From IMG/VR virus record IMGVR_UViG_3300008117_000011, positions 1-64,000 of that record: a stretch of DNA of 64,000 nucleotides; one strand, given 5' to 3'. This document shows positions 7,007-44,094 of the stretch, piece by piece (the first letter of the stretch is position 1; every line of letters begins with the position of its first letter). The notes under the pieces are model-generated. The model ran no database searches. It saw only the letters and a list, made by a program, of their open reading frames with translations, and was not told the origin of the DNA. Made by a program: the position numbers and the translations under genes.

Positions 7007-7105
7007 ACAAATAAATATGTAAAGGTTATTAATATAACTATAAAAAAAATACACCAAAAATAAATTATGGTGTATTTTTTAATTTTTTATTAAAATAAAA
7101 TTATT

Positions 7106-23646: not shown

Positions 23647-23776
23647 AATAATAAATATATCGTAAAATAAAAAACCCTCCGGCTGGAGGGTCTATGATGA
23701 GGTTTTATTTTTTAAATTGTTTATTATACCTCATCAACTGAAATATAAAAAATGATTTAAATATGGAAATGAAAAA

Positions 23777-24151
23777 TTATTGAATATCATTAAATCCATC
23801 TAGAATTATTGAATGATATATCTTTTCAAGATGGGGAATTAGCTGCCAGTACATATCAAAAACTCTATCCCTACTGTCATCGTTATAGACCATCCCATAC
23901 TCCGGGTCCATCTCGGTCTCAATTTCATCATCCTTTCTTTCAACAACAAACTCGTGAAGGGTACCGGCAATTATATCATATGAATAACCCTCAAAATCTT
24001 TTTTATAAGTATAATTTTTACCACCACTAATATTTTTATGAATTCTTCTTTCAATCCACTCAAGATCCTCCGTTGTTAATCTTCTTTTAAGATACACCGG
24101 AATACCTGAAAATAAAAGTTTGCTCTGGGATTCGGTTATAATGATTTTCAT
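23777..24151 (-). CDS. Leader-tagged 'RR' family protein
   Basis: MKIIITESQ...IPVYLKRRL; paralogue of 24255. Confidence 0.8.
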   Translation of the reverse strand: MKIIITESQSKLLFSGIPVYLKRRLTTEDLEWIERRIHKNISGGKNYTYKKDFEGYSYDIIAGTLHEFVVERKDDEIETEMDPEYGMVYNDDSRDRVFDMYWQLIPHLEKIYHSIILDGFNDIQ

Positions 24152-24254: not shown

Positions 24255-24620
24255 TTAGTTATATTGTTTCCAAATTTCATATAGTTTGTCACGATACATT
24301 TCAATTAGAAGCGGTGTCAAATCTTTATATAGTTCAACAACCTTATTAAAACTACTCTCATAAAACATTTCACCATAATCTGGATCAATAAAGGTTTCAA
24401 TTTCATCACCCTTTCTTTCCGTAACAAATTCGGTTATGGTATAACCAACAACATTATTAACAAAAGTCTCAAAACTAACATTTGCCGGTTCATAACGGGC
24501 CATACTGGGAATTTTATGTTCAATATAATCAAAATCATCAGCCGTTAATCGTCTCATTAGTGTGGGGGATAATTTACCTACTAGAGATTTGTGTTGTGAT
24601 TCTGTTATAATGATTTTCAT
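24255..24620 (-). CDS. Leader-tagged 'RR' family protein
   Basis: MKIIITESQ...LMRRL...EFVTERKGDEIET..DP.YG. Confidence 0.8.
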   Translation of the reverse strand: MKIIITESQHKSLVGKLSPTLMRRLTADDFDYIEHKIPSMARYEPANVSFETFVNNVVGYTITEFVTERKGDEIETFIDPDYGEMFYESSFNKVVELYKDLTPLLIEMYRDKLYEIWKQYN

Positions 24621-29258: not shown

Positions 29259-29729
29259 CTAATCTATTTCTTCATCCTCACCATTCACTATTTGTTCGGA
29301 ATCTAATACCACCGTTACACTTCTACCAGCAAATGCAGGTTCCCAGGATGCCATTGTTCTAAATGGAAAAAACTTATTCATTTCATCACGTAATGTACTT
29401 ACAAGCCAAGATTCCATATTACTGGTCGGATTATTTGTGTTAAAATGTATTTTAATTCTTACTTTATCTGGTCTATCTTTATTAATTTCTAAATGTAATA
29501 TATCAACATCTTCTATATCTGCATGATAAATAAAACTTTTAACCAACATCTCCTGGGTTTTTAAATCATTTAAATCAAGGTTTAATACCTTTGATAAATT
29601 ATCTATCCCACCAACCGCTTTTGATGTTCTAACAACTCCTAGTGTTTTAATCATATTAGTTAACCTATCTTGACCTTTTTGTGATGTCTCTTCCCTTAAT
29701 ATTCTTCTTATGGATTCATGTATATTCAT
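29259..29729 (-). CDS. MNLQE-leader protein
   Basis: MNIHESIRRILREETS; KAVGGIDNL module. Confidence 0.8.
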   Translation of the reverse strand: MNIHESIRRILREETSQKGQDRLTNMIKTLGVVRTSKAVGGIDNLSKVLNLDLNDLKTQEMLVKSFIYHADIEDVDILHLEINKDRPDKVRIKIHFNTNNPTSNMESWLVSTLRDEMNKFFPFRTMASWEPAFAGRSVTVVLDSEQIVNGEDEEID

Positions 29730-29730
29730 A

Positions 29731-30414
29731 TTACATTACTTTATTTAAAAATATTTTGATTGCGTCTATTATTTTTTGTTCGTTATGGTCAAAATCTTTT
29801 TTGTAAATATTAAAAGGGTCAATTACTTCAAATGTAATTAAAACATCAAAGATTATTGCTATTTGGTGTCTTTCATTGATCCCTTTTTCTATAGCCCATG
29901 TTTTTCCATTTTTTTCAAAAAAAAGGGTTTTAACAATTCTAGATGTTTTTTCATCTCTAACGGGTATTTTTTTAACTTCAAAACGTCTTTTTAAAAAATT
30001 TAGTATTTTTTTAGTTATATATTCAGTTTCTTCTCTTAATACTTTTCTTATTGATTCTTGTAGGTTCGTATATAGTTCTGATATTAATCTTTCATATCTA
30101 ACCTTGATTCTATCTTTATAATATTCTTCTAAACTTTTTTTAGCGTCAACATACCATTGGATATCTCCCGGTATTGTACTATATAATTCATAATGGATCC
30201 CATCAATTAAAATTGAAATTGTTACTTCTACAAATCTTTTTAAACTCATAGCGTCCCCACCATTTTTAATTAAATTAAAAAACATATTTGATGCCATATC
30301 TAATGACTCCTCAAACTCTCTTTCTAAATCCTCGTGTGGTACTCTACGTCGGATTGCTAACATAAAATTGGTTTCTTCCCTTAATATTCTTCTTATGGAT
30401 TCTTGTAGGTTCAT
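29731..30414 (-). CDS. MNLQE-leader two-module fusion
   Basis: Leader + RRR domain, internal NLQESIRKVLREE, then a domain paralogous to 52956. Confidence 0.8.
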   Translation of the reverse strand: MNLQESIRRILREETNFMLAIRRRVPHEDLEREFEESLDMASNMFFNLIKNGGDAMSLKRFVEVTISILIDGIHYELYSTIPGDIQWYVDAKKSLEEYYKDRIKVRYERLISELYTNLQESIRKVLREETEYITKKILNFLKRRFEVKKIPVRDEKTSRIVKTLFFEKNGKTWAIEKGINERHQIAIIFDVLITFEVIDPFNIYKKDFDHNEQKIIDAIKIFLNKVM

Positions 30415-30418
30415 CTAT

Positions 30419-31522
30419 TTATGATTTAATTATTCTCATAATATTTTTAATCCTTTTAATATGTTCATTTAATCTTTGATTATTACCTAATTTTTGAAAA
30501 AACCAATTATACAATTTATTTTTTTTCATATTTTCAAGTGATTCATAATCTTCAAACTGAACATATCTGTCATGAACATCTTTTAATTTTTCAAAAGAAC
30601 AATCACATCTTTGACCTTCTTTATATATTTTATTTTCAAAATAATCAAGTTGTTCTTTGTATTCACTATTATTAGGATTATTATCTAATCTATTTTTCCA
30701 ATATTTTATATTATTAATATAAGTCTCATAATCACTATTAGTATTATCCACAACAGCCGTCATACTACGAGGATTTTGACAAATTGGGCAATAGTACCCC
30801 CATGACCAATCAGACATTTTTTCTGGTTTTTCTCCGTCAGGGTTACATTTTTTACAGACCTCAGATTTTTTTACCATTCCTTTTGGGTAATCGGCATCAG
30901 AACTCACCCATGGCATCATTGCGTCTGAACTACATTGATTACAAACATCTCTGTATTTACCTTCTTTTCTATTTTTGTAATATTCATCATTTTCTTTTCT
31001 TTTCTTATCTTGTTCTTTGTATGTTTTATAATGTCTACCACCAAACAAATAATCAAAATAAACTTTATTACCCATATAATTTACAACATCATCATTAGGT
31101 GTCCATATTGGAACATCTTCAACACTTTTAAAAATATTCATCTCTGAACCATCATAATCTGTGTAAGGTAAATATTCTCCCCTTTTTTTAAGCCATTCTT
31201 GATAAAACTTACCAGCGGCATCTTGATTTCCATTAAAAAATTTATCAACCAAAATATCTTGCATAATATACCTATCAAGTGGTCTATTATTTTTATCATC
31301 TTCTATTGCACTAATAGCCTTAAAATTATCTATTGCCCTCTGTCTAACATCATCAGTCCTACCAAAAGTATTGGGTCTTGTTGGACTAATTGGCTTTCCA
31401 TAACCTTTTTCTTTTAATACGGTTTCCAATTTATTTAAAAATTTTGATGGGTCACCTTTTACGTAGTTATCGTAAAAAACATTATCAATAATCTCATTCC
31501 AATTTATTTCTTTATCTTCCAT
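30419..31522 (-). CDS. Cys-rich (multiple CxxC) hypothetical protein with C-terminal leader-like motif
   Basis: CNQC, CKKC, CPIC, CDC; ends LNEHIKRIKNIMRII. Confidence 0.75.
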   Translation of the reverse strand: MEDKEINWNEIIDNVFYDNYVKGDPSKFLNKLETVLKEKGYGKPISPTRPNTFGRTDDVRQRAIDNFKAISAIEDDKNNRPLDRYIMQDILVDKFFNGNQDAAGKFYQEWLKKRGEYLPYTDYDGSEMNIFKSVEDVPIWTPNDDVVNYMGNKVYFDYLFGGRHYKTYKEQDKKRKENDEYYKNRKEGKYRDVCNQCSSDAMMPWVSSDADYPKGMVKKSEVCKKCNPDGEKPEKMSDWSWGYYCPICQNPRSMTAVVDNTNSDYETYINNIKYWKNRLDNNPNNSEYKEQLDYFENKIYKEGQRCDCSFEKLKDVHDRYVQFEDYESLENMKKNKLYNWFFQKLGNNQRLNEHIKRIKNIMRIIKS

Positions 31523-31532
31523 ACTATATAAT

Positions 31533-31571
31533 TTATTTTAATATTCTTCTTATGTTTTCTTGTAGGTTCAT
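31533..31571 (-). pseudogene. Orphan leader mini-ORF MNLQENIRRILK-stop
   Basis: DNA essentially identical to the leader of 34142-34657 but ends in TAA where E is expected. Confidence 0.6.
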
Positions 31572-31951
31572 ATTACTATATTTCTAATTTGTTTACCTCT
31601 CATTCCTTCAGTGGTCTGGCCAGAATAAAATGATTCACCCATAATAAATATTCTTTTTCCTTTATGTTCCTCCAAGAATGATAAAATAAATTCCATTGCC
31701 GTTAACACAGTATCTACCATTTCGTATTGAAGGCCATCTTGGTCAATAAGTTCTTTTCTTATAGAATTAAATTTTGATGTCAACTGGTGTTCTATAATTC
31801 TAAATACCGTATTTGTTCTAGCAATAAACTGTTTACCATCAATTGTAATCAAAGGAGAATCAATTATTTCAAATTCATATGTTGTATCTCTTCTTATAAT
31901 TGTCTCAATTTGATACTCCAATATTTCGTTAAGTTCTTCTTGTAGGTTCAT
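31568..31951 (-). CDS. MNLQE-leader protein
   Basis: MNLQEELNEILE. Confidence 0.75.
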   Translation of the reverse strand: MNLQEELNEILEYQIETIIRRDTTYEFEIIDSPLITIDGKQFIARTNTVFRIIEHQLTSKFNSIRKELIDQDGLQYEMVDTVLTAMEFILSFLEEHKGKRIFIMGESFYSGQTTEGMRGKQIRNIVI

Positions 31952-31995
31952 ATGTTATAAATATATCATACCTAGATTACCTAAGTATAATATAC

Positions 31996-32295
31996 CTATT
32001 TGTTGTATATCTTCCCCCTAATACTTTTACCATATTTATTTTTTATATATTCATATAACCCGGAATGAATTTTTTTCATCTCCTCTGTTTTTGAAAGCCA
32101 GACAATGAATGTATCCATATTAAGACTTTCGGTCATAATGTGATTTGAAATATCTGTTATTAGTCTATGTTCCCACACATCCGGTTTAAGTGTTTTAGAA
32201 AGCATCTTTGACCCATTACAATTTAAATATAAATTAAATACCTCATCAATTAATGGTACTCTTCTGGCAATTATGTGTTTTACGTCTGGACCCAT
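31996..32295 (-). CDS. 'RR' family protein without leader
   Basis: HIIARRV...YIKNKYGKSI. Confidence 0.65.
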   Translation of the reverse strand: MGPDVKHIIARRVPLIDEVFNLYLNCNGSKMLSKTLKPDVWEHRLITDISNHIMTESLNMDTFIVWLSKTEEMKKIHSGLYEYIKNKYGKSIRGKIYNK

Positions 32296-32373
32296 TTTTT
32301 AAAGATAATAAAACTACCCATAATAAAAAAGGGGACCTATATCTGGTCCCCTTTGTAATGTGTGATAAATATA

Positions 32374-32709
32374 TTAATCACCACAATGAAGGTGATAGTA
32401 TTGTTTTACTTTATCTCCGAATATATCTTTGATATAATTTTCCATTGCTTTGTATGCCTGTTCCCACTCCGGTGTTGCATAACTAATATGCTCCTCAAAA
32501 TATGCGTAGTACATATCTTCTATTACACCGGCTGTAAGATGTATTAAAACCTCATCCCCATTTCTATAGCGACAAATCTTCTCAGGACGATATGTTGTTG
32601 ACATATGGTAATATATCAAGTCTTCTAAATTAACAATTCTTCTTCTTATGTAGTGCGGAAGATTTGTTTCTTCTTTTAGAACTCTTCTTATGTTTTCTTG
32701 TTGGTTCAT
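32374..32709 (-). CDS. MNLQE-leader RRR family protein
   Basis: MNQQENIRRVLKEETNLPHYIRRRI. Confidence 0.8.
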   Translation of the reverse strand: MNQQENIRRVLKEETNLPHYIRRRIVNLEDLIYYHMSTTYRPEKICRYRNGDEVLIHLTAGVIEDMYYAYFEEHISYATPEWEQAYKAMENYIKDIFGDKVKQYYHLHCGD

Positions 32710-33572
32710 TATTTATTGTGATATATATTATATAACTCTTTAATTTCGTCCTCAAATACATTGGAAACTTCTGTAACAAATTCTATTTCTTCTTCCGATG
32801 GTAAATCTTCCCACCCAAGTTCATATTTATTCCAAATAATTGCTTCCACAGCCCTTAAAGTTAATTCATATTTAAATTGTTCATAACTTTCCGTTTCGTA
32901 ATATACTTGATCGGCATTTATTGGGAGCAGGTATTTAACCTCATCTAAATCAATTCTCCTATGAAAGAATTTTGATTCATTTAATATTCTTCTTATGGAT
33001 TCTTTTAATCCTAATAAATCATCCATACTAATTGTTGCACTATCATTACCTAGTTTATTAAGCATATCCGCAAATACATTAGGTTCTTCAGGTGTTTTTG
33101 GTTCTTCATATTTAGTTTTGTTACTTGGGTATTTTCCTGTTTTTTGATAAACCTCCATATCATCATCTTTTTGTTCGTCAGAACTAATTAATTTAAGAGC
33201 CGAAGGTGGTATTGGGTCTAAAGTTACATAGTATTTAAAATCATTCCCATCATCTTTATGTATTGGGTCATGAAACCATTGGTTATTTATTTTAGATAAA
33301 TCTATTTCCCATTCATCCCCACCAAAAAAACTATATTCAGGGTCTGAAGCAAAGACCATTGGTAATGGGTCTGAATCAGGAAAATTATGAGACATATAAT
33401 TTGAGGTGTATTTACCAACTTTGGGTAATAACCCGTGTTTTTGGATACTTTCTCTATTTTTATACGTTGTTCTATGTCGTAACACCCCTTTTGGATGTGC
33501 GGGAACTAAAACATCTCTTAATTGTTTAACCTCTTCCCTTAATATTCTTCTTATGGATTCTTTTAAGTTCAT
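32709..33572 (-). CDS. Leader-tagged ADP-ribosyltransferase-like (Tpt1/KptA-type fold) domain fused to RRR domain
   Basis: LRHRTT..NRESIQKHGLLPK...VFAS...WEIDL...IPPSAL; internal LKESIRRILNE; start re-called. Confidence 0.55.
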   Translation of the reverse strand: MNLKESIRRILREEVKQLRDVLVPAHPKGVLRHRTTYKNRESIQKHGLLPKVGKYTSNYMSHNFPDSDPLPMVFASDPEYSFFGGDEWEIDLSKINNQWFHDPIHKDDGNDFKYYVTLDPIPPSALKLISSDEQKDDDMEVYQKTGKYPSNKTKYEEPKTPEEPNVFADMLNKLGNDSATISMDDLLGLKESIRRILNESKFFHRRIDLDEVKYLLPINADQVYYETESYEQFKYELTLRAVEAIIWNKYELGWEDLPSEEEIEFVTEVSNVFEDEIKELYNIYHNK

Positions 33573-33612
33573 ATGTAATAAATATATTATTATTCTTATA
33601 TTTGTGGATATT

Positions 33613-34155
33613 ATGGATTGTATCGTCACCGAAAATAAAAAATCAAACACCATTAAACTTATTCATAGTAAAATAAGTGAGTGGGGAGTAATTGGTGCTA
33701 GTCAAAGACTTGGTCTTTCTATTGATAAGTTTGTTGAACTTGGTGTTTTTAACTATCGTTTTGACACATTTCTTAATTACACAGATCTTCTTTATTTATC
33801 ACTATATGTTGTTGAAAAGAGTGGTCTGGTAAGTAAAGTTGATGAGACTTATGATTTTATGTGGTGGGGTGGGAATTCTAGGATGTATTTTGATTGTGCT
33901 GACTTAATTAATAATAATACTATGGTCGGATATGGAACACCATATTATGATGATATTCCTTATCTGGAGATTGAATCTGAAGTTTTTAATAAGTATTCTA
34001 TTGATTTTCGTAGAACTTATAAGTTAAAGTCCATTTCAGAATTTAAATCATTTAATGAATTTGAATCTTATATCTTAAATGATGTGTCAAAACTTGTATC
34101 AGACACAATCTTTGATGTTATTGAAAGAGTTGAAAGGGAAATTAAGGAAGGGTAA
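33613..34155 (+). CDS. 'GYATP' family protein with degenerate leader
   Basis: MDCIVTENKK; VGYGTPYY; TATATTTG upstream. Confidence 0.7.
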   Translation: MDCIVTENKKSNTIKLIHSKISEWGVIGASQRLGLSIDKFVELGVFNYRFDTFLNYTDLLYLSLYVVEKSGLVSKVDETYDFMWWGGNSRMYFDCADLINNNTMVGYGTPYYDDIPYLEIESEVFNKYSIDFRRTYKLKSISEFKSFNEFESYILNDVSKLVSDTIFDVIERVEREIKEG

Positions 34156-34657
34156 CTGATGGTTCAAAACTTATAATATAATCATCTTCGTCTAATTTAA
34201 GTTGTCTTGCCAAATCATATGTAAAATCCTCAAATAGATATTTTAACTCCCATTTCATTGCTTTAAGATTAAAACCATCTTCACCATCTTTCAGATCTGC
34301 CAAATCATATGTTTTTTCCTCCCCATTCCTTAATGTAACTGTTACTGTTCCTTCTAATATCTTATAATAAAAGGTCATAGTCCCATACATATCAAGTTCT
34401 ACGTGTCTTATCTGGAATTTAAAATCGTATCCTTCTGTGTAGTCAGATTTAAAGTCATTTGATGAAAATATTTGATTCTGGAGATGTCGTCCAAGAAGTA
34501 TTGTTGGTCTTTCATTTAAAATCTTTCCCAGATTATTAATTCCATTTACTTTTTTTGCAACCGGAATGATACCATCCTTCTTAATCATCTTAAGTAGCCT
34601 GGACTGGATGGATGTTTCTTCTTTTAATATTCTTCTTATGTTTTCTTGTAGGTTCAT
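34142..34657 (-). CDS. MNLQE-leader protein (GYDF...EGTV family)
   Basis: Paralogous to the C-terminal half of 39709. Confidence 0.8.
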   Translation of the reverse strand: MNLQENIRRILKEETSIQSRLLKMIKKDGIIPVAKKVNGINNLGKILNERPTILLGRHLQNQIFSSNDFKSDYTEGYDFKFQIRHVELDMYGTMTFYYKILEGTVTVTLRNGEEKTYDLADLKDGEDGFNLKAMKWELKYLFEDFTYDLARQLKLDEDDYIISFEPSVTLP

Positions 34658-34983
34658 TTTTTTTTCATATTTCTATAATACATAATAAGAACTGGATCAT
34701 AAACTGATATCATATGTTTTACAAATGTATCTATATCTTCTTTTGGTAATTCTTTCTCAATCTCAATATTGTATTTGTTAAAAATATAGTTCTCTAGCGT
34801 TGCCTCAACTAATTTGTATTTGAACTCTTCTAGTGAGTTTGAATCGTAATACATATATGGAATTCCCTTTCTCATCATTTTCTCAAATTTATGATGATCA
34901 ACCCTTCTAGTGAAAAAATAAGGTAGTTTATTGTTTTCGGTTTCTTCTTTTAATATTTTTCTTATGGTTTCCTGTAAATTCAT
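34654..34983 (-). CDS. MNLQE-leader RR family protein
   Basis: MNLQETIRKILKEE...LPYFFTRRV. Confidence 0.8.
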   Translation of the reverse strand: MNLQETIRKILKEETENNKLPYFFTRRVDHHKFEKMMRKGIPYMYYDSNSLEEFKYKLVEATLENYIFNKYNIEIEKELPKEDIDTFVKHMISVYDPVLIMYYRNMKKK

Positions 34984-35176
34984 ATAACAATAAATATATA
35001 ACCGGGAGGTTTAATTAATACTTTTTTATTGTCATAAATGGGATATATACTCGGATTTTTTCCGATTATATATTTAAAATTCGTCATTAAGTCCGGCAAC
35101 TGTTATAAGTATAATCCCAACAATTAAAATTAGTGTCATATTATTTTTTACTGAGATATAAGTAAAAAATAATTAA

Positions 35177-35515
35177 TTATCTATAAATGTGTGTATACTC
35201 TTTTTTGATTTTATCATCAAAGTATTCCGAAAGGGCTGAAAAGGTCTCCTCATGCCATTCTTCATTTTCATCAAATGATGTATATAACTGCCAGTGAAGT
35301 CCATCAATTGTCATTGATATTACAACAAATTTATATCTATCTAAATCTGGTTTTGTTCCAGTTCTTGAGTATTCTCTTTGGAACATTTCTTTTGCTGAGT
35401 CTAATGACGATTCAAATTCTTCTTCAATATCCTCTTGTGAAACCCTACGTCTTATAAATGCCGGAAGTTTTGTTTCCTCTTTTAATATTCTTTTTATGGA
35501 TTCTTTTAAATTCAT
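35177..35515 (-). CDS. MNLQE-leader RRR family protein
   Basis: Start re-called; close paralogue of the first module of 29731 (IDGLHWQLY / IDGIHYELY). Confidence 0.8.
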   Translation of the reverse strand: MNLKESIKRILKEETKLPAFIRRRVSQEDIEEEFESSLDSAKEMFQREYSRTGTKPDLDRYKFVVISMTIDGLHWQLYTSFDENEEWHEETFSALSEYFDDKIKKEYTHIYR

Positions 35516-35665
35516 ATAATCATAAATACTATTAGAAATAAAAAACCCCATCTTTATCAGATGAGGTGATAAATTATTTCATCGTTTAGATTGAGGTAAT
35601 AAACCCACACCGTCACACCCGGTATTTGGCGGTCAGATTATTTATTAGGAGTTCTGACATCCTTT

Positions 35666-36040
35666 TTACATATCAAAGTATTTATACATACTACAATCAG
35701 CATTATTGTAATATTCTTTTATTTCTTTATCAAACATTCTTTTAATATTATAAAGTAACTCACCATAAACTGCATATTCCTCGTCCTCATCTTTTCTATA
35801 GTACTCCGGAAATATCTCAAGTGTTCTTTCAGCAACTGCTCTTACAACAACACTCCAGTAAAGTTGTAAACCATACTCAGGATCCTTATCTTTATACTTA
35901 TCTTTCCAGTAACAAGGTTCCTGGTCCTCAAGTTCTTGTTTTAATATTTTATCTACACTATCAAATCTTCTAATTATGAACATTTCATAATCATTTCTTT
36001 CTTCTCTTAGAACTTTTCTTATGGATTCTCTTAAATTCAC
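35666..36040 (-). CDS. MNLQE-leader RR family protein
   Basis: MNLRESIRKVLREE...FIIRRF. Confidence 0.8.
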   Translation of the reverse strand: MNLRESIRKVLREERNDYEMFIIRRFDSVDKILKQELEDQEPCYWKDKYKDKDPEYGLQLYWSVVVRAVAERTLEIFPEYYRKDEDEEYAVYGELLYNIKRMFDKEIKEYYNNADCSMYKYFDM

Positions 36041-36498
36041 TTATATGTTGTTTCAGGTATTTTATTAATATCTACATCATCTATTAGTAGCTGGACCACA
36101 TACTTTCTTCTAATAATTACTTCTATGTCCTCAATCAAATCTGAATAATATGAATGTATTCTTTTATCTGTTGATACAATTTTTGCACTTACACTAAATG
36201 TTGGCATTTTTTTACTAGTATAGTATTCTGCTTCACCTGTAACATTTTTAATTGATGTTATTTTAAATTCTTTAATTGTATCTATAATATCACAAGTAGT
36301 TGGTGACAACCATTCATTATTAATTGCAAAGTCAGCAAAGTCCATATATTGATCCTGGGTTTTACAAAGTTTGTTAGTTGAGGTGATTACCTCATCAATT
36401 ATCTTTTGAAATCTCTTAACTAGTTTATCGTCACTTTCATTAAGTTCAGATACATTCATTAAACCCTTTATTCTTGACAGCTCTTCATTTAATTTCAT
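36037..36498 (-). CDS. Leader-tagged protein, paralogue of 44659
   Basis: MKLNEELSRIKGLM; W.S...CD.I..I..(F/I)K shared. Confidence 0.75.
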   Translation of the reverse strand: MKLNEELSRIKGLMNVSELNESDDKLVKRFQKIIDEVITSTNKLCKTQDQYMDFADFAINNEWLSPTTCDIIDTIKEFKITSIKNVTGEAEYYTSKKMPTFSVSAKIVSTDKRIHSYYSDLIEDIEVIIRRKYVVQLLIDDVDINKIPETTYK

Positions 36499-36536
36499 AT
36501 ATATAAATATTTATATGTAACCTATTTTGTAAATAA

Positions 36537-37115
36537 ATGAAATATATAATCACAGAAAGTCAATTAAGTAGAACCAAAAACTTTGTTTTTAATAAGATAG
36601 ATGAGTGGGGTCTTTGGAAAACAATTGACAGACTTAATTTAAATATTGATACTCTTGATAGAATTTTTGATGGTGGTATGCCAGATTGGTTTAATTGTGG
36701 TGTACTTAATGATTTAATCAAGTTTTACTATAGTAAAGGAGAAATAAAACTAAATAAAACTAAAGAAATAGATGGTGTTTTATATGGTTTAAAATGTGAT
36801 TGGGATGACTTTGGTAATGCAAACTATTTTAAATTAACTAACTTTGAAACTAAAGAGGGTATTAGCGGTTATGCCACACCATACTGGGAAGGTAATTGTT
36901 ATTTACCAATTGATGCCGAATATTATACATACGATGCTGAAGAAGATTTTAACGAATTTAATTTTCACGAATACGAAACTTTTAATTTAAAAAGTAAATT
37001 TTCTTCTTTTAGGGAATTCAAAGAATACGCCGATAATGAAATCCCTGATATAATAATAAATTACATAGTAAGAATATTACCTAAGACAAGAGAAGAGTCC
37101 GGGAGTTGGGATTAA
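36537..37115 (+). CDS. Leader-tagged 'GYATP' family protein
   Basis: MKYIITESQL; SGYATPYWEG. Confidence 0.8.
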   Translation: MKYIITESQLSRTKNFVFNKIDEWGLWKTIDRLNLNIDTLDRIFDGGMPDWFNCGVLNDLIKFYYSKGEIKLNKTKEIDGVLYGLKCDWDDFGNANYFKLTNFETKEGISGYATPYWEGNCYLPIDAEYYTYDAEEDFNEFNFHEYETFNLKSKFSSFREFKEYADNEIPDIIINYIVRILPKTREESGSWD

Positions 37116-37116
37116 A

Positions 37117-37455
37117 TTATAAACTAATTGTAACCCCAACAAACATAACTAAAGCTCCGGTAACAATTGGGTAAAATCTTGGTTGAGAATAAAATGGTTT
37201 CTTTTCAGTTGTAGATCCTCCAACATAAACCGGTGGTGTTAGAACTCCGGCTAATATAAATGCTGCCCCACCCATTAACATTCCACCGCCAACCGAAATT
37301 CTAGATTGTGGTGAAGAATCATATGGAGGAAGATTAAGTTGCACCTTAGTTGTTTGTATTTCTTTTACTGGTGTAAAATCAAACGATTGGTACGAATCTT
37401 GAGAAAAACAAGTAAACGTAAATAAACTTAAAAGGATAACCAATATATTTTTCAT
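37117..37455 (-). CDS. Secreted/membrane protein with signal peptide
   Basis: MKNILVILLSLFTFTCFSQ; two C-terminal hydrophobic segments. Confidence 0.75.
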   Translation of the reverse strand: MKNILVILLSLFTFTCFSQDSYQSFDFTPVKEIQTTKVQLNLPPYDSSPQSRISVGGGMLMGGAAFILAGVLTPPVYVGGSTTEKKPFYSQPRFYPIVTGALVMFVGVTISL

Positions 37456-37586
37456 AGTTTTTGATAAATTTTAACGACAGTTGTTGTATCTGTTTTTTGT
37501 TTATGATTTCCGTAAGCATCACAATCAATTTTTTTTGATGATTTACAGGCAAATAGTAGTGGTAAAATAATTAATAGTTTTTTCAT
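37452..37586 (-). CDS. Small lipoprotein, 44 aa
   Basis: MKKLLIILPLLFAC...CDAYG; ATGA overlaps at both ends. Confidence 0.65.
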   Translation of the reverse strand: MKKLLIILPLLFACKSSKKIDCDAYGNHKQKTDTTTVVKIYQKL

Positions 37587-37744
37587 CCTTGAGGTTGTTT
37601 TTGAGTTTTCTTTTTATTTATAAATTTCCTAATCTCAACACCAAGGTCCTGATCATTAGCATATTGTTTAACTAGTTTTTCAATTATCTCCAGTTTTAAG
37701 TTCTCCTGGATATAACAAATTTTATTCAGACTATTGTTTTCCAT
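37583..37744 (-). CDS. Small hypothetical protein, 53 aa
   Basis: IEKLVKQYANDQDLGVEIRK read by hand. Confidence 0.6.
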   Translation of the reverse strand: MENNSLNKICYIQENLKLEIIEKLVKQYANDQDLGVEIRKFINKKKTQKQPQG

Positions 37745-37798
37745 CTTTCCAATCATTAAATGTCATATCAAATCCCATATCTTATCTTGTTTGTCTTA

Positions 37799-37830
37799 CA
37801 AAGATAAGAATATTATTTTATATTTCCAAA
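37799..37830 (-). promoter_or_regulatory. Bacteroidota-type promoter
   Basis: TTTG-N20-TATCTTTG. Confidence 0.7.
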
Positions 37831-37833
37831 TTT

Positions 37834-38322
37834 TTATTTAACAATTTCCCAACAAGTTTTATCAGCAACCCCCAAATCGTATGGACATCGTGTTTTAACC
37901 CCCTCTCTCAATCCAACAACACTATATTTATCACCACCTTTAATTATACTTGTTTTACCATTGGTATCTTGATACATACTACGAACATGAACAATACATT
38001 CTCCCCCAACAACTGAACAAAATACATCACCTCTGTTTGTTCCACTACTCGGTAATCTTAAAATTGTTCCCTTTGGTATGTCAATTGTTTCGGGTGTGTT
38101 ATATGAATTTGAAGTTCCTTTCAAATCTTTCTTTGCTCGGATAAGTATATCACCCTTTAATTCAAAATTGGGTTTCCTTTCCTCAAGAATATCCAAACTA
38201 TCTTTTGTTAATCGGCTTAACACTTGTTTGTCATCCAACTCATTTACCAATATCTCATTTAGAGTATCAGTATTACCACTCGCAAGTTCATCAGCAATTT
38301 GCTTAATCAATAAATCTCTCAT
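37834..38322 (-). CDS. Hypothetical protein, probably early
   Basis: Start re-called at MRDLLIKQ after host-type promoter. Confidence 0.7.
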   Translation of the reverse strand: MRDLLIKQIADELASGNTDTLNEILVNELDDKQVLSRLTKDSLDILEERKPNFELKGDILIRAKKDLKGTSNSYNTPETIDIPKGTILRLPSSGTNRGDVFCSVVGGECIVHVRSMYQDTNGKTSIIKGGDKYSVVGLREGVKTRCPYDLGVADKTCWEIVK

Positions 38323-38346
38323 AACGTTTGTTTTAATTAGAAAATA

Positions 38347-38377
38347 CAAAGATAAGAAAAATGTTTTGATTTGCAAA
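38347..38377 (-). promoter_or_regulatory. Bacteroidota-type promoter
   Basis: TTTG-N19-TATCTTTG. Confidence 0.7.
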
Positions 38378-38380
38378 GGA

Positions 38381-38707
38381 TTATTTTTGTTTGTTATACC
38401 AATTAATGAACTTCACAACACCATCATACGCAATATTAATTTCACAAGAAAAAACAGTTTCTTCAAGATCCCTAAGTATGTAAATATCATTTGCATCTTT
38501 TGGATTACTCAATAGGTTCTTACACGTTTTAACTACTGGCATCAACCATTCCCAAGACTTATTATATTTCATTTCATTAGGCTCTAAGAAAGGAAAATCC
38601 AAATCATAAAAATAGTATCTATCATCATTTATACCTTCGTGATATCTAAGTGTTTTAATACCCATAAAGTCCGCGATCATTACATTCTTTTCTTCAATTG
38701 TTACCAT
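38381..38707 (-). CDS. Conserved phage hypothetical protein
   Basis: N..IADFMG...KY..SW.WLMPVV...V.FI.WYN pattern common in Bacteroidota phages. Confidence 0.75.
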   Translation of the reverse strand: MVTIEEKNVMIADFMGIKTLRYHEGINDDRYYFYDLDFPFLEPNEMKYNKSWEWLMPVVKTCKNLLSNPKDANDIYILRDLEETVFSCEINIAYDGVVKFINWYNKQK

Positions 38708-38712
38708 ATCTC

Positions 38713-38793
38713 TTAGTCTTTTCTATTTATATTAATACCTATGATAATTCCCGTGATTATCCCAATCGCTAACATTAATGTTTCTATATTCAT
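38713..38793 (-). CDS. 26 aa hydrophobic micro-protein
   Basis: MNIETLMLAIGIITGIIIGININRKD; between repeated AAGAGATATG starts. Confidence 0.5.
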   Translation of the reverse strand: MNIETLMLAIGIITGIIIGININRKD

Positions 38794-38808
38794 ATCTCTT
38801 ATTGTTTA

Positions 38809-39030
38809 TTACTCATTAACTGAACCGTAGGTTTTACCCCAAAGACCAGTAACGATTACTTGTGTCTCTTTAAGCGGTAATGGTTCATTAATTTTGGTTT
38901 TACCTAACACCAATAACATACCTTCAATCGCACCCAATCGTCTTAGAATATCTTTACTATTGTGTTTTTGATCGTGCATGTTAATAATGATAATTGAAAT
39001 GTCTTTTTTGATTTCTTCTCTGGTCTTCAT
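38809..39030 (-). CDS. Small hypothetical protein
   Basis: Start re-called at MKTREEI after TATCTTTG. Confidence 0.6.
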   Translation of the reverse strand: MKTREEIKKDISIIIINMHDQKHNSKDILRRLGAIEGMLLVLGKTKINEPLPLKETQVIVTGLWGKTYGSVNE

Positions 39031-39121
39031 ATCTCTTATTGTTTCTACAAAGATACAACGCAAATAAAAAACCCACAACCTGTTAAAGTGTGGGTTTTGA
39101 TCTATTTTAATAGACAAAAAA

Positions 39122-39712
39122 TTACATAAGATTTTTAATTCTTTGGATTTCTTCTTTTACGATTTCGTGACCTCCACCATCTAACTTATCTGTAAAACCC
39201 ATAAGTTTGTCAAATGCCGGATGAGACTGAATTGGTTCTTTCTTTTTATCTTTCATTTGATTCCAGGTAGATGGTTTTACCTTCATATGGTTTTTAACAA
39301 GATATTTGATTTCATCAACATCTGTTCCTTCAAACGAACTAATCCACTCTTTGAATTGGTCAACATAGTCTGCTGACTTATCTTCGTGTCCATATGCTGT
39401 TGGTTGTCCGGTCTTTGGATTAATTGCATAAACATCCATCTTTCCAAGGTCGTGAAACAATGCTGCCATAATCATATTGGGGTCATCTGGGTAATGATGA
39501 TAAGCTCTTTTTAAAACAATAATGATATGTTTTAATGTGTTTCCTTCCGGATGCCATTCAGGGTTTTGTTTTGCACTCCATTGTTTAAATAATAATTCTT
39601 TTAATTCTGGTGTTAGATTTTTAATTAACTCTTGTGGTGTTGCGTGAAGTTTCTCTTCAGATATAATATTCATCATATTTTTAATTGTTTCTATATTTTC
39701 TCTTAAATTCAT
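39122..39712 (-). CDS. HD-domain phosphohydrolase with leader motifs at both termini
   Basis: QNPEWHPEGNTLKH...AALFHDLGK...GHE...NHM. Confidence 0.8.
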   Translation of the reverse strand: MNLRENIETIKNMMNIISEEKLHATPQELIKNLTPELKELLFKQWSAKQNPEWHPEGNTLKHIIIVLKRAYHHYPDDPNMIMAALFHDLGKMDVYAINPKTGQPTAYGHEDKSADYVDQFKEWISSFEGTDVDEIKYLVKNHMKVKPSTWNQMKDKKKEPIQSHPAFDKLMGFTDKLDGGGHEIVKEEIQRIKNLM

Positions 39713-40647
39713 TTTTTAAATATAACTCTAAATTTAACAAATCCTAAATCACTATCAAGTCTTAATTGTCTAAATAATTCACGATAATTATCATTTAATA
39801 TATCTTGTATTTCATATGTAACTTCCCAGAAATAATCAGCCTCTTGAAATTCCGGATCTAATAAATTGTGAGTTCTATCATCATTAGTCATTATTAATTC
39901 AACAGTTCCTTCCTGGACCTCAAAAATAAAATCAAATCTTCTAACACCAACATCACTATAATCATTATCTTGAATGTCTATAATTTTACCAACAAAGTCA
40001 TAACCACCAGTATCATTTAACTCGTAGGTTGATATTTCTTTTCCTAAAGCAAATTGTTTTAATAGTTCTAATACCGATGTGTCTAATACTTTTGCTAAAT
40101 TAAAAATTCCATTAACTTTTCTTGCGGTTCGGATAAGACCTTCCTTATCAATTAAATCTTTTAATTTTTTTTTTAATGAAGTTTCTTCTTTAAGTATTTT
40201 TGAGATGTGTTCTTTTAAACTATAACTTTCTTTAATGTCTTTACCTAAAAGTACGGCCCAAACACGAAAAAGATCTTCGGAATCCTTTTGTAAAGTTCTA
40301 TTAAAGTTGGCCATATATTTTCTATCAAACTCATCATAATCATCGGTTTCTTCATCGCCGGTATTTTCATTGGCCTTTGATATTTTCATTTGGACTCCAA
40401 CTTTCATAAGTCTTTCCATATTATCGGCCATATCTAGTAACTCTTCAAAATTTTCCTTATCTGGAATATGTTTATACTTAAATTCGTGTTCCAGTCTTTC
40501 TCTTCCGATATAAAGAAATGATGGTGCCTGCCACATATTAATAATCCCAGAATCTCTTAATACTTTAAAAAATTGTGATACCTTTTTAAAATTATAAAAT
40601 TTATTTAAGGTTGTCATTTTTTTTCTTGCCTCTGTTTTTGCATCCAT
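39709..40647 (-). CDS. Two-module fusion protein
   Basis: LRDSGIINMW module, internal LKEHISKILKEETS, then a 34142-like module. Confidence 0.75.
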   Translation of the reverse strand: MDAKTEARKKMTTLNKFYNFKKVSQFFKVLRDSGIINMWQAPSFLYIGRERLEHEFKYKHIPDKENFEELLDMADNMERLMKVGVQMKISKANENTGDEETDDYDEFDRKYMANFNRTLQKDSEDLFRVWAVLLGKDIKESYSLKEHISKILKEETSLKKKLKDLIDKEGLIRTARKVNGIFNLAKVLDTSVLELLKQFALGKEISTYELNDTGGYDFVGKIIDIQDNDYSDVGVRRFDFIFEVQEGTVELIMTNDDRTHNLLDPEFQEADYFWEVTYEIQDILNDNYRELFRQLRLDSDLGFVKFRVIFKK

Positions 40648-40683
40648 ACTAAATAAATATCAATTACAACGTAAATTATCATT

Positions 40684-40712
40684 TTGACAATAAGGATTAA
40701 TATTCCTATAAT
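40684..40712 (+). promoter_or_regulatory. Perfect TTGACA-N17-TATAAT promoter, overlapping a TAATTTTG element
   Basis: Read directly upstream of 40719. Confidence 0.6.
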
Positions 40713-40718
40713 TTTGTT

Positions 40719-41048
40719 ATGTCAAATTTAATAAATAATACGATTATGGAAGAAGAAAAGAAATCAGTTGTTGAAAAACTGAAGGTTATTGGGAAAAAAG
40801 TTGGTATAATTACCACACTTTGTGTTACTGTGTTAGGAGCCTTTTCTCTTGGGTATATCTATAGTAGAAGTACAACAAAAATAAAACCAATTGTTGTAAA
40901 TCATATTGATAATTCAGATGTCAATTTAGCTTTAGATCAAAATAATCATCTTATGGTTATTGATAAAAAAACTGGGAATTACACAATATATGATGATTCT
41001 GTTGGTGTTACAATTTTTAATATTTACGCAAGAAATCTAAGTCATTAA
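40719..41048 (+). CDS. Single-TM membrane protein
   Basis: One TM segment; start may be 40746. Confidence 0.75.
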   Translation: MSNLINNTIMEEEKKSVVEKLKVIGKKVGIITTLCVTVLGAFSLGYIYSRSTTKIKPIVVNHIDNSDVNLALDQNNHLMVIDKKTGNYTIYDDSVGVTIFNIYARNLSH

Positions 41049-41050
41049 TT

Positions 41051-41599
41051 ATGAAACCTAAATTTTATATATTGTTTTGTTATTTTACTATTGTGTTTGG
41101 TTTAGGTCTGTACGCATTTACTTTAAGTAAACAAGAAAGAGTACGTAAAATAGAATTGTCATATTGTTCAATGTATGATACAAGAACGCCAACATCTCTT
41201 AAAATGTACGCCTTAATTGAAAAGTACTCTTCAGAATATAATATACCAAAATATGTTGCTTATAACGTTGCGTACCGGGAAACAAGGTATATGGGTCCGT
41301 TCCATTGGAGATATAATCCCTATCAAACGTCTTGTGCCGGCGCTGAAGGGCCAATGCAGATTATGATTAAAACTTGTAATGGGTTAAATAAGTCAAGATA
41401 TTCAAAGAAGGAACTTAGAAGAAACCTTGAGTTAAATGTACGTACAAGTATGAAACTTCTTAATCGTTTACATAAAAAATATAAAAACTGGTCGGTTGTA
41501 TGTGGTTGGTACAATACCGGTAGACCTATTGTGAATGAGTATGGTAAGTACTGTGGTACAAATCTAAATTATAAAACCAAGTGGATTCAATTAGATTGA
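41051..41599 (+). CDS. Membrane-anchored lytic transglycosylase (SLT family)
   Basis: N-terminal TM; VAYRET (catalytic E), GAEGPMQI, GWYNTG. Confidence 0.8.
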   Translation: MKPKFYILFCYFTIVFGLGLYAFTLSKQERVRKIELSYCSMYDTRTPTSLKMYALIEKYSSEYNIPKYVAYNVAYRETRYMGPFHWRYNPYQTSCAGAEGPMQIMIKTCNGLNKSRYSKKELRRNLELNVRTSMKLLNRLHKKYKNWSVVCGWYNTGRPIVNEYGKYCGTNLNYKTKWIQLD

Positions 41600-44094
41600 T
41601 TCCCTCTATATATAACAATGTTGGCCCTAGTAATTCTTTTATTGGGTCCGACATTGTATCCTTTTTCTTTAAACTCCTCATTAAAGAATTCTCTAAAAGC
41701 TTCCTTAAATATATCCCCAATCCATCCTCTTGTTCTAATTTTACTCTCAGCTAAATCCATTATTTTAAAATCATAAGCCAGAGAGTTATTTTTAACATCA
41801 TAATATCCTAAACAATTCTCACCCTTATTATCCCCAAAAATAAAAAGTTTTGTCTTTGAGTCATTATAAGAATAAGATTTAAGTTCTTTTTTTAAAATCT
41901 TCTTAATTGCATTTTTTAATATTCTTTCACTTTTTTCTTCATTCTCATTAAGACCTCTTTTCTTTCTTCCCTGACAATGCGCTCTTTGTGAAAACCCTTG
42001 TGGATTATTACAATCAATACTTCTTTTATATTTTTCAGACCACTTTTCATTAACCTCTTTTTGGTTTGCAATTTTTCTGATACTTACAATTTTAACACCC
42101 TCACCTTTATTTTTAAGTGTGACCTCGTTTTCATTTGGGTAAAGTAAATTGTTATATATTGTTTGGTCAATATCCACCAATTCTTTTGGCGCAAGAACTG
42201 TGATCATAAATGAATTATCTCCAATACCATCAGCAAATGAGTGACTATCTAACAAATCTTTTTTGTTTTTTGCATAGTGATCTCCGGGTTTATCCGTATC
42301 AATATCTTTTCTATCGTCCGCTTTTATTATTCTAAATAATTTAATTTCTTCAGGTAGATTCTTAATTGATTTAATAATATATTCAATTTCTTCTTTTGAT
42401 TCTTCTTCAGAATAGCCCATATGTTTTTTACCTTGGTCTATTAAACTTTTCAATTGTTTTTTTGATAAGTTGAGTGGATCTTTTACTTCGGAAATAACTT
42501 TTTTTTTTCTTAACGATTCTGTAATCGTATTTTGTTTTTCAATTTCATCATTTAATACTCTTACAAATTCTCTTTGTATAGCTTTTGTTAGTTCAACATA
42601 AGTTCTAATTTCAGGTTCCTTTTCTTCACCCTCGGATCCAATTGATTGATTTTCTTTTTCAATAATTTTCATCGCAGCTTCAATTTGTTTATCTGACAAC
42701 GAACCAAATTTATTGTATTTGTATTGTAAATCATTTACAAATTTATTTGTCCCTAAATAATTTAAAATTGGTTTTACCTCATCTGGGGTATTCATTTCAA
42801 ATTTTACTGGGTTATTACGATACAAATATGAAAGACCTGAAATGTTTGTAATACATTTGTGACCACCGGAGTTTGCTTGAACTATATCCCAACCATTAAT
42901 AGATATTTTATTTAAAAGTTCTTTTTGTTTATCAGATAATGTTCTATATAGTTTTGTTGAGATGTTCTCAATAATTCTTAAAATATTTTCGTTCACACCT
43001 TTAGTACTAAAAGATTCTCTATTTCCATAAAGGGCCACAAAATCTTTATAGGTAAAACCAACAGAAGAATAATCTGTTTTAAATTCTGACAATTTTTTAA
43101 TCTCACCAAATGTAATCTTCATATCTTTAAGTAAAGTTTCAAATTTACTTAATACAACATCTTTCATTTTACCTAAATCAACCCCTTTAAGTGCTCTATC
43201 TTCTTTGAATGGGTTACAAGAAGCTTGGACTAGACCTAGTGGCCAAGCAATAACAATAAAGTCAGCATCTGGATTATTTTTAAATGGTGTGTATCTATCA
43301 TATGACCCAGGTTCTCTCATATTACCACCACCATATTGCACGATGATATTACCAAGCCTTTTTACTTCACCACTTTGTTTTTGTTTTTCAATATATGCTT
43401 CTTGGTTTTTTGTAAGTTCATCAGTATTAGCATAACCCTTATCTTTAATTTGTTTTTTAATATTATTTAAAATACTTAAAAGTGATGGTTGTGCATTCAT
43501 TACAATGTAATCTAGAAACCCCGGTTTGTTTTTAAATGCTAAAAGCAATTTATTTGCAACAAGACCCATCTTAATTTTATTTGCTCTTGACGTATCACTT
43601 GGGTCAAACTTGAATAGGTAGTTCATAACCATTTCTGGTGTAATCTTATTTACAGCAAAGTTTGCTGAGTCAACAATTGATATTAACTGAACATCTTCAT
43701 CCGGAAATATTAATGATGGTGATACAACTTGTGAAATAGTTTCAACGTTTGATCTTGATGGTCTAAAGTTTGTTGATGTTCCAGCTTCAACACCGGCTTG
43801 TGTGTCGTGATGATCTGTATGGATTTCAAACATTGGTTTTCCGTGGGCAAAGTCAACAAGTACTGGCATAACTTCTCCGTGAGCATCCGCTTTCTTAATT
43901 GACCATTCTTTATCACCATATTGGATTAATTCTGCGTCAACAACTTTGATTCCGTATTTTTCTAAATAGTTTTTCATTGCTAGGGCTGTAGTAACCCCAT
44001 CAAGATCCATATGATAATATATCTTAGCTTTCTTATATCTTTGTGCTAATTTATTTATATTTCTGATTCCAGATTCTTTTAAAATAGATTTCAT
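41587..44094 (-). CDS. DHH-family phosphoesterase-like polyprotein with appended modules
   Basis: HMDLDG, LVDF, HTDHH, GGH motifs; later modules follow ITES/ISE/VNE/LNE (e.g. KWSEKYKRSIDCNNPQGFSQRAHCQGRKK). Confidence 0.75.
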   Translation of the reverse strand: MKSILKESGIRNINKLAQRYKKAKIYYHMDLDGVTTALAMKNYLEKYGIKVVDAELIQYGDKEWSIKKADAHGEVMPVLVDFAHGKPMFEIHTDHHDTQAGVEAGTSTNFRPSRSNVETISQVVSPSLIFPDEDVQLISIVDSANFAVNKITPEMVMNYLFKFDPSDTSRANKIKMGLVANKLLLAFKNKPGFLDYIVMNAQPSLLSILNNIKKQIKDKGYANTDELTKNQEAYIEKQKQSGEVKRLGNIIVQYGGGNMREPGSYDRYTPFKNNPDADFIVIAWPLGLVQASCNPFKEDRALKGVDLGKMKDVVLSKFETLLKDMKITFGEIKKLSEFKTDYSSVGFTYKDFVALYGNRESFSTKGVNENILRIIENISTKLYRTLSDKQKELLNKISINGWDIVQANSGGHKCITNISGLSYLYRNNPVKFEMNTPDEVKPILNYLGTNKFVNDLQYKYNKFGSLSDKQIEAAMKIIEKENQSIGSEGEEKEPEIRTYVELTKAIQREFVRVLNDEIEKQNTITESLRKKKVISEVKDPLNLSKKQLKSLIDQGKKHMGYSEEESKEEIEYIIKSIKNLPEEIKLFRIIKADDRKDIDTDKPGDHYAKNKKDLLDSHSFADGIGDNSFMITVLAPKELVDIDQTIYNNLLYPNENEVTLKNKGEGVKIVSIRKIANQKEVNEKWSEKYKRSIDCNNPQGFSQRAHCQGRKKRGLNENEEKSERILKNAIKKILKKELKSYSYNDSKTKLFIFGDNKGENCLGYYDVKNNSLAYDFKIMDLAESKIRTRGWIGDIFKEAFREFFNEEFKEKGYNVGPNKRITRANIVIYRGNQSN

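Follow-up and report, generated by a model that had tools for sequence, protein, structure and literature searches.

Phage T4 directs its internal proteins IPI/II/III and Alt, a packaged ADP-ribosyltransferase, into the prohead by means of a capsid targeting sequence (CTS), a short conserved N-terminal leader on otherwise unrelated, fast-evolving small proteins. The leader is processed by the prohead protease gp21, which cuts after L/I-X-E; a 10-residue CTS suffices for packaging, and Alt loses propeptides at both ends (PMC9026906, PMC3012670). Giant phages such as phiKZ, 201phi2-1 and SPN3US have a gp21-related protease that cuts many head proteins after Glu at a three-residue motif, and paralogues of their propeptide-bearing ejection and inner-body proteins share identical N-terminal propeptide starts despite diverged bodies, with redundant sites within the propeptides (PMC5694885, PMC9026906). 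In the hyperplastic regions of T4-type phages, promoter-terminator cassettes called PeSLs mediate modular shuffling of small variable genes (PMC2839356, PMC4122927). Here we describe a 13-residue tag of a T4-like jumbo phage which begins dozens of small genes, and which also sits at the joints and ends of fused multi-module proteins.

The window analyzed, a stretch of 64,000 nucleotides, is part of one genome of roughly 305 kb, since two IMG/VR contigs overlap at both ends at 99.97-100% identity. This T4-superfamily genome carries a head module in T4 order: portal, two small proteins, a Peptidase_S77 protease, an acidic 494-aa protein and a gp23-like MCP. The protease, found in the overlapping sister contig of the same genome, matches PF03420 at 80 bits against a cut-off of 27, and phrog_207 at E 1.5e-43. 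The protein features considered here all lie on the minus strand:

29731..30414 (-), two-module protein (227 aa): tag and RRR module (like 35177), then internal tag and a second module weakly like 52956
30028..30066 (-), internal tag A of 29731 (aa 118-130); ACG stands where the stand-alone genes have ATG, with no in-frame stop upstream
30419..31522 (-), 367-aa protein ending in a RIKxLM-type tag (about 30437-30472) preceded by L-N-E
32709..33572 (-), two-module protein (287 aa from M28): tag, predicted ART/KptA-like domain, disordered linker of about 50 aa, internal tag and RRR module
32976..33008 (-), internal tag A of 32709; it shares an exact 28-nt repeat with the same gene's N-terminal tag at about 33566
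34142..34657 (-), stand-alone tag A and module, the comparator for the C-module of 39709; 29259..29729 is a paralogue
34654..34983 (-), stand-alone tag A and RRR module, the comparator for the C-module of 32709; further RRR genes are 32374..32709, 35177..35515, 35666..36040, and 23777..24151 and 24255..24620 with the ITESQ-type tag
39122..39712 (-), HD-domain protein with a RIKxLM-type tag at the N-terminus and another as its last 12 residues (39125-39160), followed by a terminator-like hairpin
39709..40647 (-), two-module protein (312 aa): DUF4314-like N-module, internal tag and 34142-like module; the fusion is conserved in more than 20 orthologues
40183..40218 (-), internal tag A of 39709 (aa 144-155); it starts the helix of the second module after a low-confidence linker
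41587..44094 (-), 835-aa DHH multi-module protein with homology breakpoints against its relative at ITES (42514-42525), VNE (42046-42054) and LNE (41944-41952)
52956..53321 (-), stand-alone gene with an ITESQ-like start, a weak relative of the C-module of 29731

A sequence-only reading of this DNA had claimed that the tag recurs inside 29731, 32709 and 39709 between domains that are stand-alone genes elsewhere, that copies end 30419 and 39122, and that the DHH protein has extra modules after ITES, ISE, VNE and LNE. This observation holds, with all motif copies found where they had been placed. In 29731, an N-terminal tag is joined by an internal NLQESIRKVLREE at aa 117-130; residues 1-110 match stand-alone 35177 (44% identity, E 2e-28), while the C-terminal half resembles 52956 only weakly (25% global identity, same length, shared FLxRR and C-terminal QKII..FLN; BLAST E 0.006), so that its description as 52956-like is the weak part of the claim. 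The ORF 32709..33653 probably starts at M28 (33572), as in the orthologues, and its internal tag at aa 216 precedes a module matching stand-alone 34654 (33%, E 5e-12) and, in an alignment, the RRR family. The internal tag of 39709 at aa 144 precedes a module matching stand-alone 34142 (34%, E 2e-21) and 29259. The DHH protein was compared with a 60%-identical relative: homology breaks at ITES (aa 524-527), resumes at VNE (681-683) and breaks again after LNE (715-717), while ISE has no separate support. A degenerate 11-position pattern is expected 0.016 times in the 93,829-residue proteome and occurs 0.03 times on average in 200 shuffles, yet it is seen 9 times, 3 of them internal. We also considered whether the C-terminal tag of 39122 hides a decayed downstream module and rejected this, because the terminator follows it directly.

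Whether the motifs fall inside folded domains had been named beforehand as a possible refutation. In AlphaFold models the tag helices lie in low-confidence (low-pLDDT) linkers outside the folded domains and next to confident domains, and Pfam DUF2237 begins 2-3 residues after the tag. The modules are independent units that also occur alone or in other combinations, and tandem modules with tags at the joints are common in metagenomic relatives; the architecture covers 564 clusters, and 79 of the 150 best family representatives are multi-module. One module may carry different tag classes and orthologues swap tag class. The tagged modules are diverse, including RRR, HD, DHH, DUF2237, DUF4314 and a predicted ART/KptA-like fold. 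Internal tags are under purifying selection: the tag is the most conserved block in 23 orthologues of 39709 (0.994 against 0.94 overall), and the 32709 fusion and its tag are kept in an orthologue at only 49% identity.

Every tag class, including the ITESQ, LTESD and RIKxLM..INES classes, carries L/I-x-E, the site of T4 gp21. In 261 tags anchored only on the downstream helix, P3 is L/I in 94%, and P1 is Glu in 90% and Asp in 1%. In the second triad Glu is found in 221 of 237 and Asp in 0, while the next position tolerates Asp (17). Internal tags keep L/I and Glu as strictly as N-terminal ones, though the tagged sequences are related by descent and were retrieved with tag-containing queries. 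Of 95 internal RRR-module joints, 85% carry [ILVM]xE[STAG], against 19% of background windows; some joints keep only a minimal INE-type triad, for example at 7005..7661 in a relative, L003. Of 128 genomic [LIV]xES sites, 28 lie within about 10 residues of a start Met.

We next ranked 366 ORFs by [LIV]xES enrichment. The acidic protein between the protease and the MCP ranks first (8 seen, 0.95 expected, P 7e-6) and the 239-aa protein between the portal and the protease ranks second (6 seen, 0.73 expected, P 1e-4). In these two proteins 56% of [LIV]xE are followed by Ser, against 7% in the rest of the proteome, and control motifs are flat. The enrichment persists in five sister genomes at 40-68% identity, and in a whole-genome replicate the head-cluster proteins rank 1, 2 and 7 of 378. 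The scaffold and core identities of these proteins rest on gene order and composition only, with no family match, and PHROGs did not name them. All 5 complete tag-bearing genomes of about 300 kb encode the protease, but this co-occurrence is within one clade and is not independent evidence.

Other searches were less informative. Pfam and PHROGs searches of the tagged proteins gave only HD, weak DHH and DUF hits, and no family for the tag or the RRR module. DNA and protein searches of the phage collection found no close cultured relative; the only hits were distant DHH matches in 634- and 642-kb uncultured phages and a small Cys-rich module in cyanophages. A single-protein search of prokaryote genomes for the RRR module, which finds close relatives only, had no confirmed hit. 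An Atlas feature search was uninformative, a literature search for the motif strings returned only noise, and no paper was found that describes these tags. A complex prediction of the protease with the 29731 joint peptide gave no verdict and is evidence neither way. L/I-x-E is not depleted inside tagged modules, which was examined in a small sample as a possible sign of protease exposure. In a search for a late-promoter signature, a strong promoter-like ATATTTAT(A) motif was found 12-25 nt upstream of 75 genes, yet it precedes structural, replication and tagged genes alike and thus does not date expression.

The best reading, which we consider about as likely as not, is that the tag is a short amphipathic propeptide bounded by Leu/Ile-x-Glu triads. 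In this view it works like the T4 CTS, taking diverse small proteins and enzymes into the prohead core, and is removed by the phage's gp21-type protease. The roughly 40 nt that encode the tag are shared by many neighboring genes, so they also act as an in-frame crossover point, where recombination swaps, deletes and fuses modules. A fusion keeps a tag, and therefore a putative cleavage site, at each joint, and would be cut back into separate modules during head maturation, which is why such fusions would be tolerated and common; C-terminal copies would be C-terminal propeptides of the kind T4 Alt has. The sequence-only reading had likewise inferred that the fusions are polyproteins cut into independent cargo, with a tag that works regardless of position, and this interpretation is partly supported. 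Our analysis establishes the tag positions, the domain boundaries, module shuffling at the tag, conservation of the internal tags, the presence of the protease and the motif statistics, whereas targeting to the capsid, cleavage, separation into individual chains and ejection into the host are inferred from motifs, without peptide, virion or expression data. One hint comes from the L003 DHH protein, whose C-terminal module is a weak C45/AAT Ntn-hydrolase match (E 7e-4, below cut-off) that begins with Cys directly after L-N-E; this enzyme class needs a free N-terminal Cys. Some observations sit uneasily with the model: L/I-x-E is a short motif in Ile/Leu/Glu-rich proteins, Glu is favored over Asp in any helix, and about 45 or more tagged genes, including an 835-aa enzyme, exceed any characterized T4-type cargo set and sit in long same-strand arrays that look like a hyperplastic early region.

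The main alternative, possible but less likely, is that the tag is an in-frame recombination joint and an uncleaved inter-domain or N-terminal helix, for example a docking or oligomerization helix for a common partner. The multi-module proteins would then act intact as beads on a string, and L/I-x-E would be a by-product of an amphipathic helix with an N-cap. The crossover role of the tag-coding DNA, which the sequence-only reading did not address, could alone explain why tags sit at joints. Homology between 58-74%-identical relatives ends inside or just after the internal tag and different modules follow, the two tags of 32709 share their 28-nt repeat, and the rare Ser codon TCC (5.4% genome-wide) is used in 6 of 9 tags. 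The swapping of tag class among orthologues and the stable retention of the 39709 fusion also fit, as does the tag of 39709, predicted helical and running on into the module's first helix, which could indicate a structural role. However, this reading does not explain why the same four-residue motif is concentrated 16-fold in the two proteins flanking the prohead protease, why degenerate joints keep just [ILV]NES after losing the helix, or why Asp is excluded at both P1 positions but tolerated next door, and a linker helix has no obvious use at the extreme N- or C-terminus.

It is unlikely that the tag functions only at N-termini, as a signal or in translation initiation, with internal and C-terminal copies being non-functional scars of recent fusions between adjacent tagged genes. 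The ACG in 29731 and the absence of an upstream stop do look like a fused gene pair, internal tags are more often degenerate (56 of 96) than N-terminal ones (23 of 107), and one relative (P0162) ends 8 residues after the tag. The purifying selection seen so far argues against this, as do the persistence of the 32709 fusion and the strictly kept L/I and Glu. Internal copies lack ATG, GTG or TTG at the tag, so internal initiation is unlikely. That the fusions are assembly or frameshift artifacts of one metagenomic contig is very unlikely: although a second assembly differs by two small indels elsewhere, identical ORFs are present in an independent contig, and full-length orthologues from many samples, together with the many multi-module representatives, contradict it.

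A bolder possibility, which we hold to be somewhat less likely than not, is that a clade of roughly 300-kb T4-superfamily phages uses a set of interchangeable CTS-like tags to load dozens of different enzymes and small effectors into the capsid, encoding them as freely recombining beads on a string that the prohead protease cuts apart. That would be a natural, modular, polyprotein-based cargo system in which gene fusion and fission are selectively neutral. If the tags are capsid-targeting, protease-removed leaders, this group would carry by far the largest and most modular set of injected proteins known for a T4-type virus, and much of the dark matter in its hyperplastic region would be explained as cargo, with ART-like, HD, DHH, DUF2237 and many unknown modules as candidates for host take-over or anti-defense. 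It would show how a coding repeat can be both a sorting and cleavage signal and a recombination joint, making domain shuffling cheap because fusions are undone by processing. Natural interchangeable tags with defined cut sites would also interest those who load proteins into phage capsids. Even if cleavage proves wrong, the tag-delimited combinatorial architecture is a clear, testable case of in-frame module exchange in phages.

With the T4 internal proteins the tagged proteins share a short conserved N-terminal leader, ending in L/I-x-Glu with Glu required, on otherwise unrelated, fast-evolving small proteins, a gp21-family protease in a T4-order head gene cluster, an ADP-ribosyltransferase-like enzyme among the tagged proteins, and a C-terminal propeptide precedent in Alt. 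Short of a formal alignment, no sequence similarity to the T4 leader is evident, and we claim functional analogy, not homology. There are tens of tagged genes rather than four or five, several interchangeable tag classes, and tags inside and at the end of multi-module ORFs, which is not described for T4, and packaging and processing here are inferred from sequence. The giant-phage system is similar in its gp21-related protease, its three-residue motif with Glu, and its common propeptide starts on diverged bodies with redundant sites, but there the motifs are S/A/G-x-E or A-x-E, the propeptides are often more than 100 residues, and the modular polyprotein-like architecture is not reported; the phage studied here is closer to the T4/Rak2-like MCP lineage. 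PeSLs likewise are short conserved sequences repeated between small variable genes that act as crossover points for insertion, deletion and replacement of genes, but they are intergenic regulatory DNA. The tag repeat is coding and in frame, so recombination yields protein fusions and domain swaps, and the tag is analogous in mechanism without being a member of that class. As in viral polyproteins, one ORF holds several independently folding units with a repeated short motif, here a putative protease site, at most joints. The units are, however, not a fixed set in a fixed order, the same modules are also encoded as single genes, and the inferred processing would take place inside the prohead.

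The 64-kb window is the first part of a 223,671-bp IMG/VR virus contig with 31% G+C. A second IMG/VR contig of 154 kb (G001; loci L015-L022), from a different assembly, overlaps both of its ends at 99.97-100% identity, and the two therefore close into one circular or circularly permuted genome of about 305 kb. The window's own contig lacks the whole head module, which lies in the missing part and shows the T4 gene order:
portal
a 239-aa protein and a 156-aa protein
a Peptidase_S77 (gp21-type) prohead protease (80 bits against a cut-off of 27; phrog_207 E 1.5e-43)
a very acidic 494-aa protein
a gp23-like major capsid protein (MCP), which aligns with T4 gp23 in the PDB and is nearest to Rak2/GAP32-like jumbo phages and some Flavobacterium phages

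The sister assembly carries an extra stretch of about 420 bp, with a small additional ORF, at 38724-38818, and about 128 extra bases near 12955, next to an FKBP-like gene. This represents population-level variation in gene content that is not linked to the tags.

The window itself is a hyperplastic array of small, mostly minus-strand genes, and the products of these genes start with a few recurring motifs. We distinguish tag A, which is MNLQESIRRILREE-like, tags B and C, with ITESQ or LTESD after a hydrophobic run, and tag D, with RIKxLM, often followed by INES. Some longest-ORF starts are probably wrong, since orthologues begin at the internal Met that starts the tag. Features of the array beyond the four tags, together with these corrected starts, are as follows:
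window 1-25000 (for example 7106-7894, 16888-17550 and 20113-20550), further recurring N-terminal motifs, one being an E-K-x-R-I-L-x-M-H-like helix followed by a hydrophobic-x-E-Q triad
50459-52619, plus strand, three genes starting with a MK-x-LIR-x-IL-x-E variant of tag A that lacks the first triad
45910-50031, five or six tandem paralogues of about 230 aa with a shared MKNKLK..F..YF.G start; one relative has a faint DUF6878 hit, and the family is conserved in the related locus L003
32709-33653, probable true start at M28 (33572)
35177-35551, probable true start at M13 (35515)
35666-36040, tag starting with GTG

Every motif copy listed in the sequence-only reading was found where that reading had placed it, and its observation is confirmed. 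The N-terminal half of 29731 is 44% identical to stand-alone 35177, while the C-terminal modules of 32709 and 39709 match stand-alone 34654 and 34142, respectively (E 5e-12 and 2e-21). The proposed resemblance of the second half of 29731 to 52956 is weak, resting on 25% identity over equal length and a shared C-terminal motif. The degenerate tag pattern is expected 0.02-0.03 times in the proteome and occurs nine times, three of them internal. The two C-terminal copies, in 30419 and 39122, are real, and 39122 is followed directly by a terminator-like hairpin. The 835-aa DHH protein had been described as carrying extra modules after ITES, ISE, VNE and LNE; comparison with a 60%-identical relative shows that homology stops at ITES, resumes at VNE and stops again after LNE, so that three of the four short motifs are true module breakpoints.

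The tags are located at domain boundaries. An AlphaFold model of 32709, built on a 100-sequence alignment, gives a confident alpha/beta domain at residues 20-145 and a confident helical RRR module at 200-287. The predicted fold of the first domain (window 32709-33572) resembles ADP-ribosyltransferase / RNA 2'-phosphotransferase (KptA/Tpt1, Scabin), although the match is weak (Foldseek E 1e-3, TM about 0.4), and a paralogous module occurs in many tagged fusions. Both tags of 32709 are low-confidence helices outside these domains, the internal one sitting at the end of a roughly 50-residue disordered linker. In 39709 the tag starts the second module, right after a low-confidence stretch. In relatives, the curated Pfam domain DUF2237 begins two or three residues after the tag, whether the tag is N-terminal or internal. 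Location of the motif inside folded domains, which had been named in advance as a refuting result, was thus not observed.

A profile of the RRR module found 564 clusters among 1.8 billion representatives, and 79 of the best 150 carry two to four modules in tandem. The observation is much broader than the window. Of 96 internal modules, 40 are preceded by a full tag, and most of the rest have a shortened [ILV]NES-type remnant. Of the 95 internal joints that could be anchored on the RR motif, 85% carry [ILVM]xE[STAG], against 19% of background windows. Relatives of 32709 at 58-74% identity share the N-domain, the linker and the internal tag and then continue with different modules, namely RRR of another subtype, DUF2237, an ART-like paralogue, or others; one ends eight residues after the tag. 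The 32709 fusion itself persists in a relative at 49% identity, and the 39709 fusion persists in more than 20 orthologues, where the tag is the most conserved block. The same module occurs with tag A, B or D, or with none. A 70%-identical orthologue of the HD protein has a tag of another class at its N-terminus and a different helix at its C-terminus. At the DNA level, the two tags of 32709 share 28 identical bases, and six of nine tags use the rare Ser codon TCC, which is 5.4% genome-wide. The tag-coding DNA is therefore an in-frame recombination joint.

In the relative's DHH protein (L003 4331-7000), the C-terminal module at residues about 600-889 is a weak match to Pfam AAT (peptidase C45, an Ntn hydrolase; E 7e-4, below cut-off). 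It begins with Cys directly after L-N-E, and enzymes of that class need the Cys as a free N-terminus. At window 41944-42054 (DHH residues about 681-717), a small Cys-containing module (KWSxKYKxSIDCxxPxGFSQRAHCxGRKK) is shared with T4-like cyanophages such as S-PRM1, S-CAM9 and P-TIM68, where it is one bead in long multi-motif hypothetical proteins. A 642-kb uncultured phage (LR756502.1) lacks tags A-D, yet several genes neighboring its DHH homologue start with another recurring motif (MK-H/Y-LK-x-Y/F-E-x-F). Recurrent N-terminal leaders may be a wider habit of very large phages.

While the module exchange at the tag is shown by these comparisons, the mechanism proposed for the tags, including cleavage and packaging, is inferred from motifs. 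When tags were anchored only on their downstream helix, the three preceding positions were L/I (94%), Q/K, and Glu (90%, Asp 1%). The second triad, at the end of the tag, has Glu in 221 of 237 cases and Asp in none, while the next residue tolerates Asp. Internal tags are as strict as N-terminal ones, and all tag classes share the triad followed by Ser. Ranking all 366 ORFs by excess of [LIV]xES places the acidic protein between the protease and the MCP first (8 against 0.95 expected) and the 239-aa protein between the portal and the protease second (6 against 0.73 expected). These are the positions of T4 gp22 and gp67/68, which gp21 cuts at many sites, although scaffold and core roles are assigned here by synteny and composition only. 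In these two proteins 56% of [LIV]xE are followed by Ser, against 7% elsewhere, and control motifs are flat. The excess persists in five sister genomes at 40-68% identity, and in a whole-genome replicate the head-cluster proteins rank 1, 2 and 7 of 378. Among the proteins most enriched in [LIV]xES in the sister genome is a roughly 500-aa protein (full-genome coordinates 273940-275439, outside the window; homologue in sister genome G005 at 282611-283999) with a tag D-like start followed by Y-N-E-S and long acidic, proline-rich repeats, which may be another scaffold or internal head protein. The MCP has L-L-E-S at residues 4-7 and I-N-E-A near the place that aligns just upstream of mature gp23.

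The sequence-only reading, in which the fusions are polyproteins cut into independent cargo and the tag works regardless of position, is partly supported, and we consider the CTS and polyprotein interpretation about as likely as not. The motif is short, no depletion of sites inside modules was seen, the co-occurrence with the protease is within one clade, and a predicted complex of the protease with the 29731 joint peptide favored neither outcome. An ATATTTAT(A) motif lies 12-25 nt upstream of the start codon of about 75 genes (for example at window 23646-23670, 34983-35000 and 40647-40665, and upstream of the sheath, protease and terminase genes outside the window) and is 16-fold enriched in intergenic DNA. 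This is probably a phage promoter or initiation element with very short leaders, but it precedes structural, replication and tagged genes alike and does not discriminate timing. The main alternative is that the tag is an uncleaved joint or docking helix whose coding DNA mediates shuffling. This would explain the boundaries and the breakpoints, yet it does not explain the scaffold enrichment, the exclusion of Asp, or the survival of bare INES-type remnants.

The simplest reading is that [LIV]-x-E, usually followed by Ser, is the site of this protease. T4 gp21 cuts after L/I-X-E, the 10-residue CTS of the T4 internal proteins is sufficient for packaging, Asp in place of Glu blocks processing, and Alt loses propeptides at both ends (PMC9026906; PMC3012670). 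The triad in the tags, the motif in the scaffold-position proteins, and its specificity and replication all match that picture. About 45 or more tagged genes, however, is far beyond any known T4-type cargo. In this view the tags would be CTS-like propeptides, a variation on the T4 system in which fused proteins would be cut at their internal tags inside the prohead.
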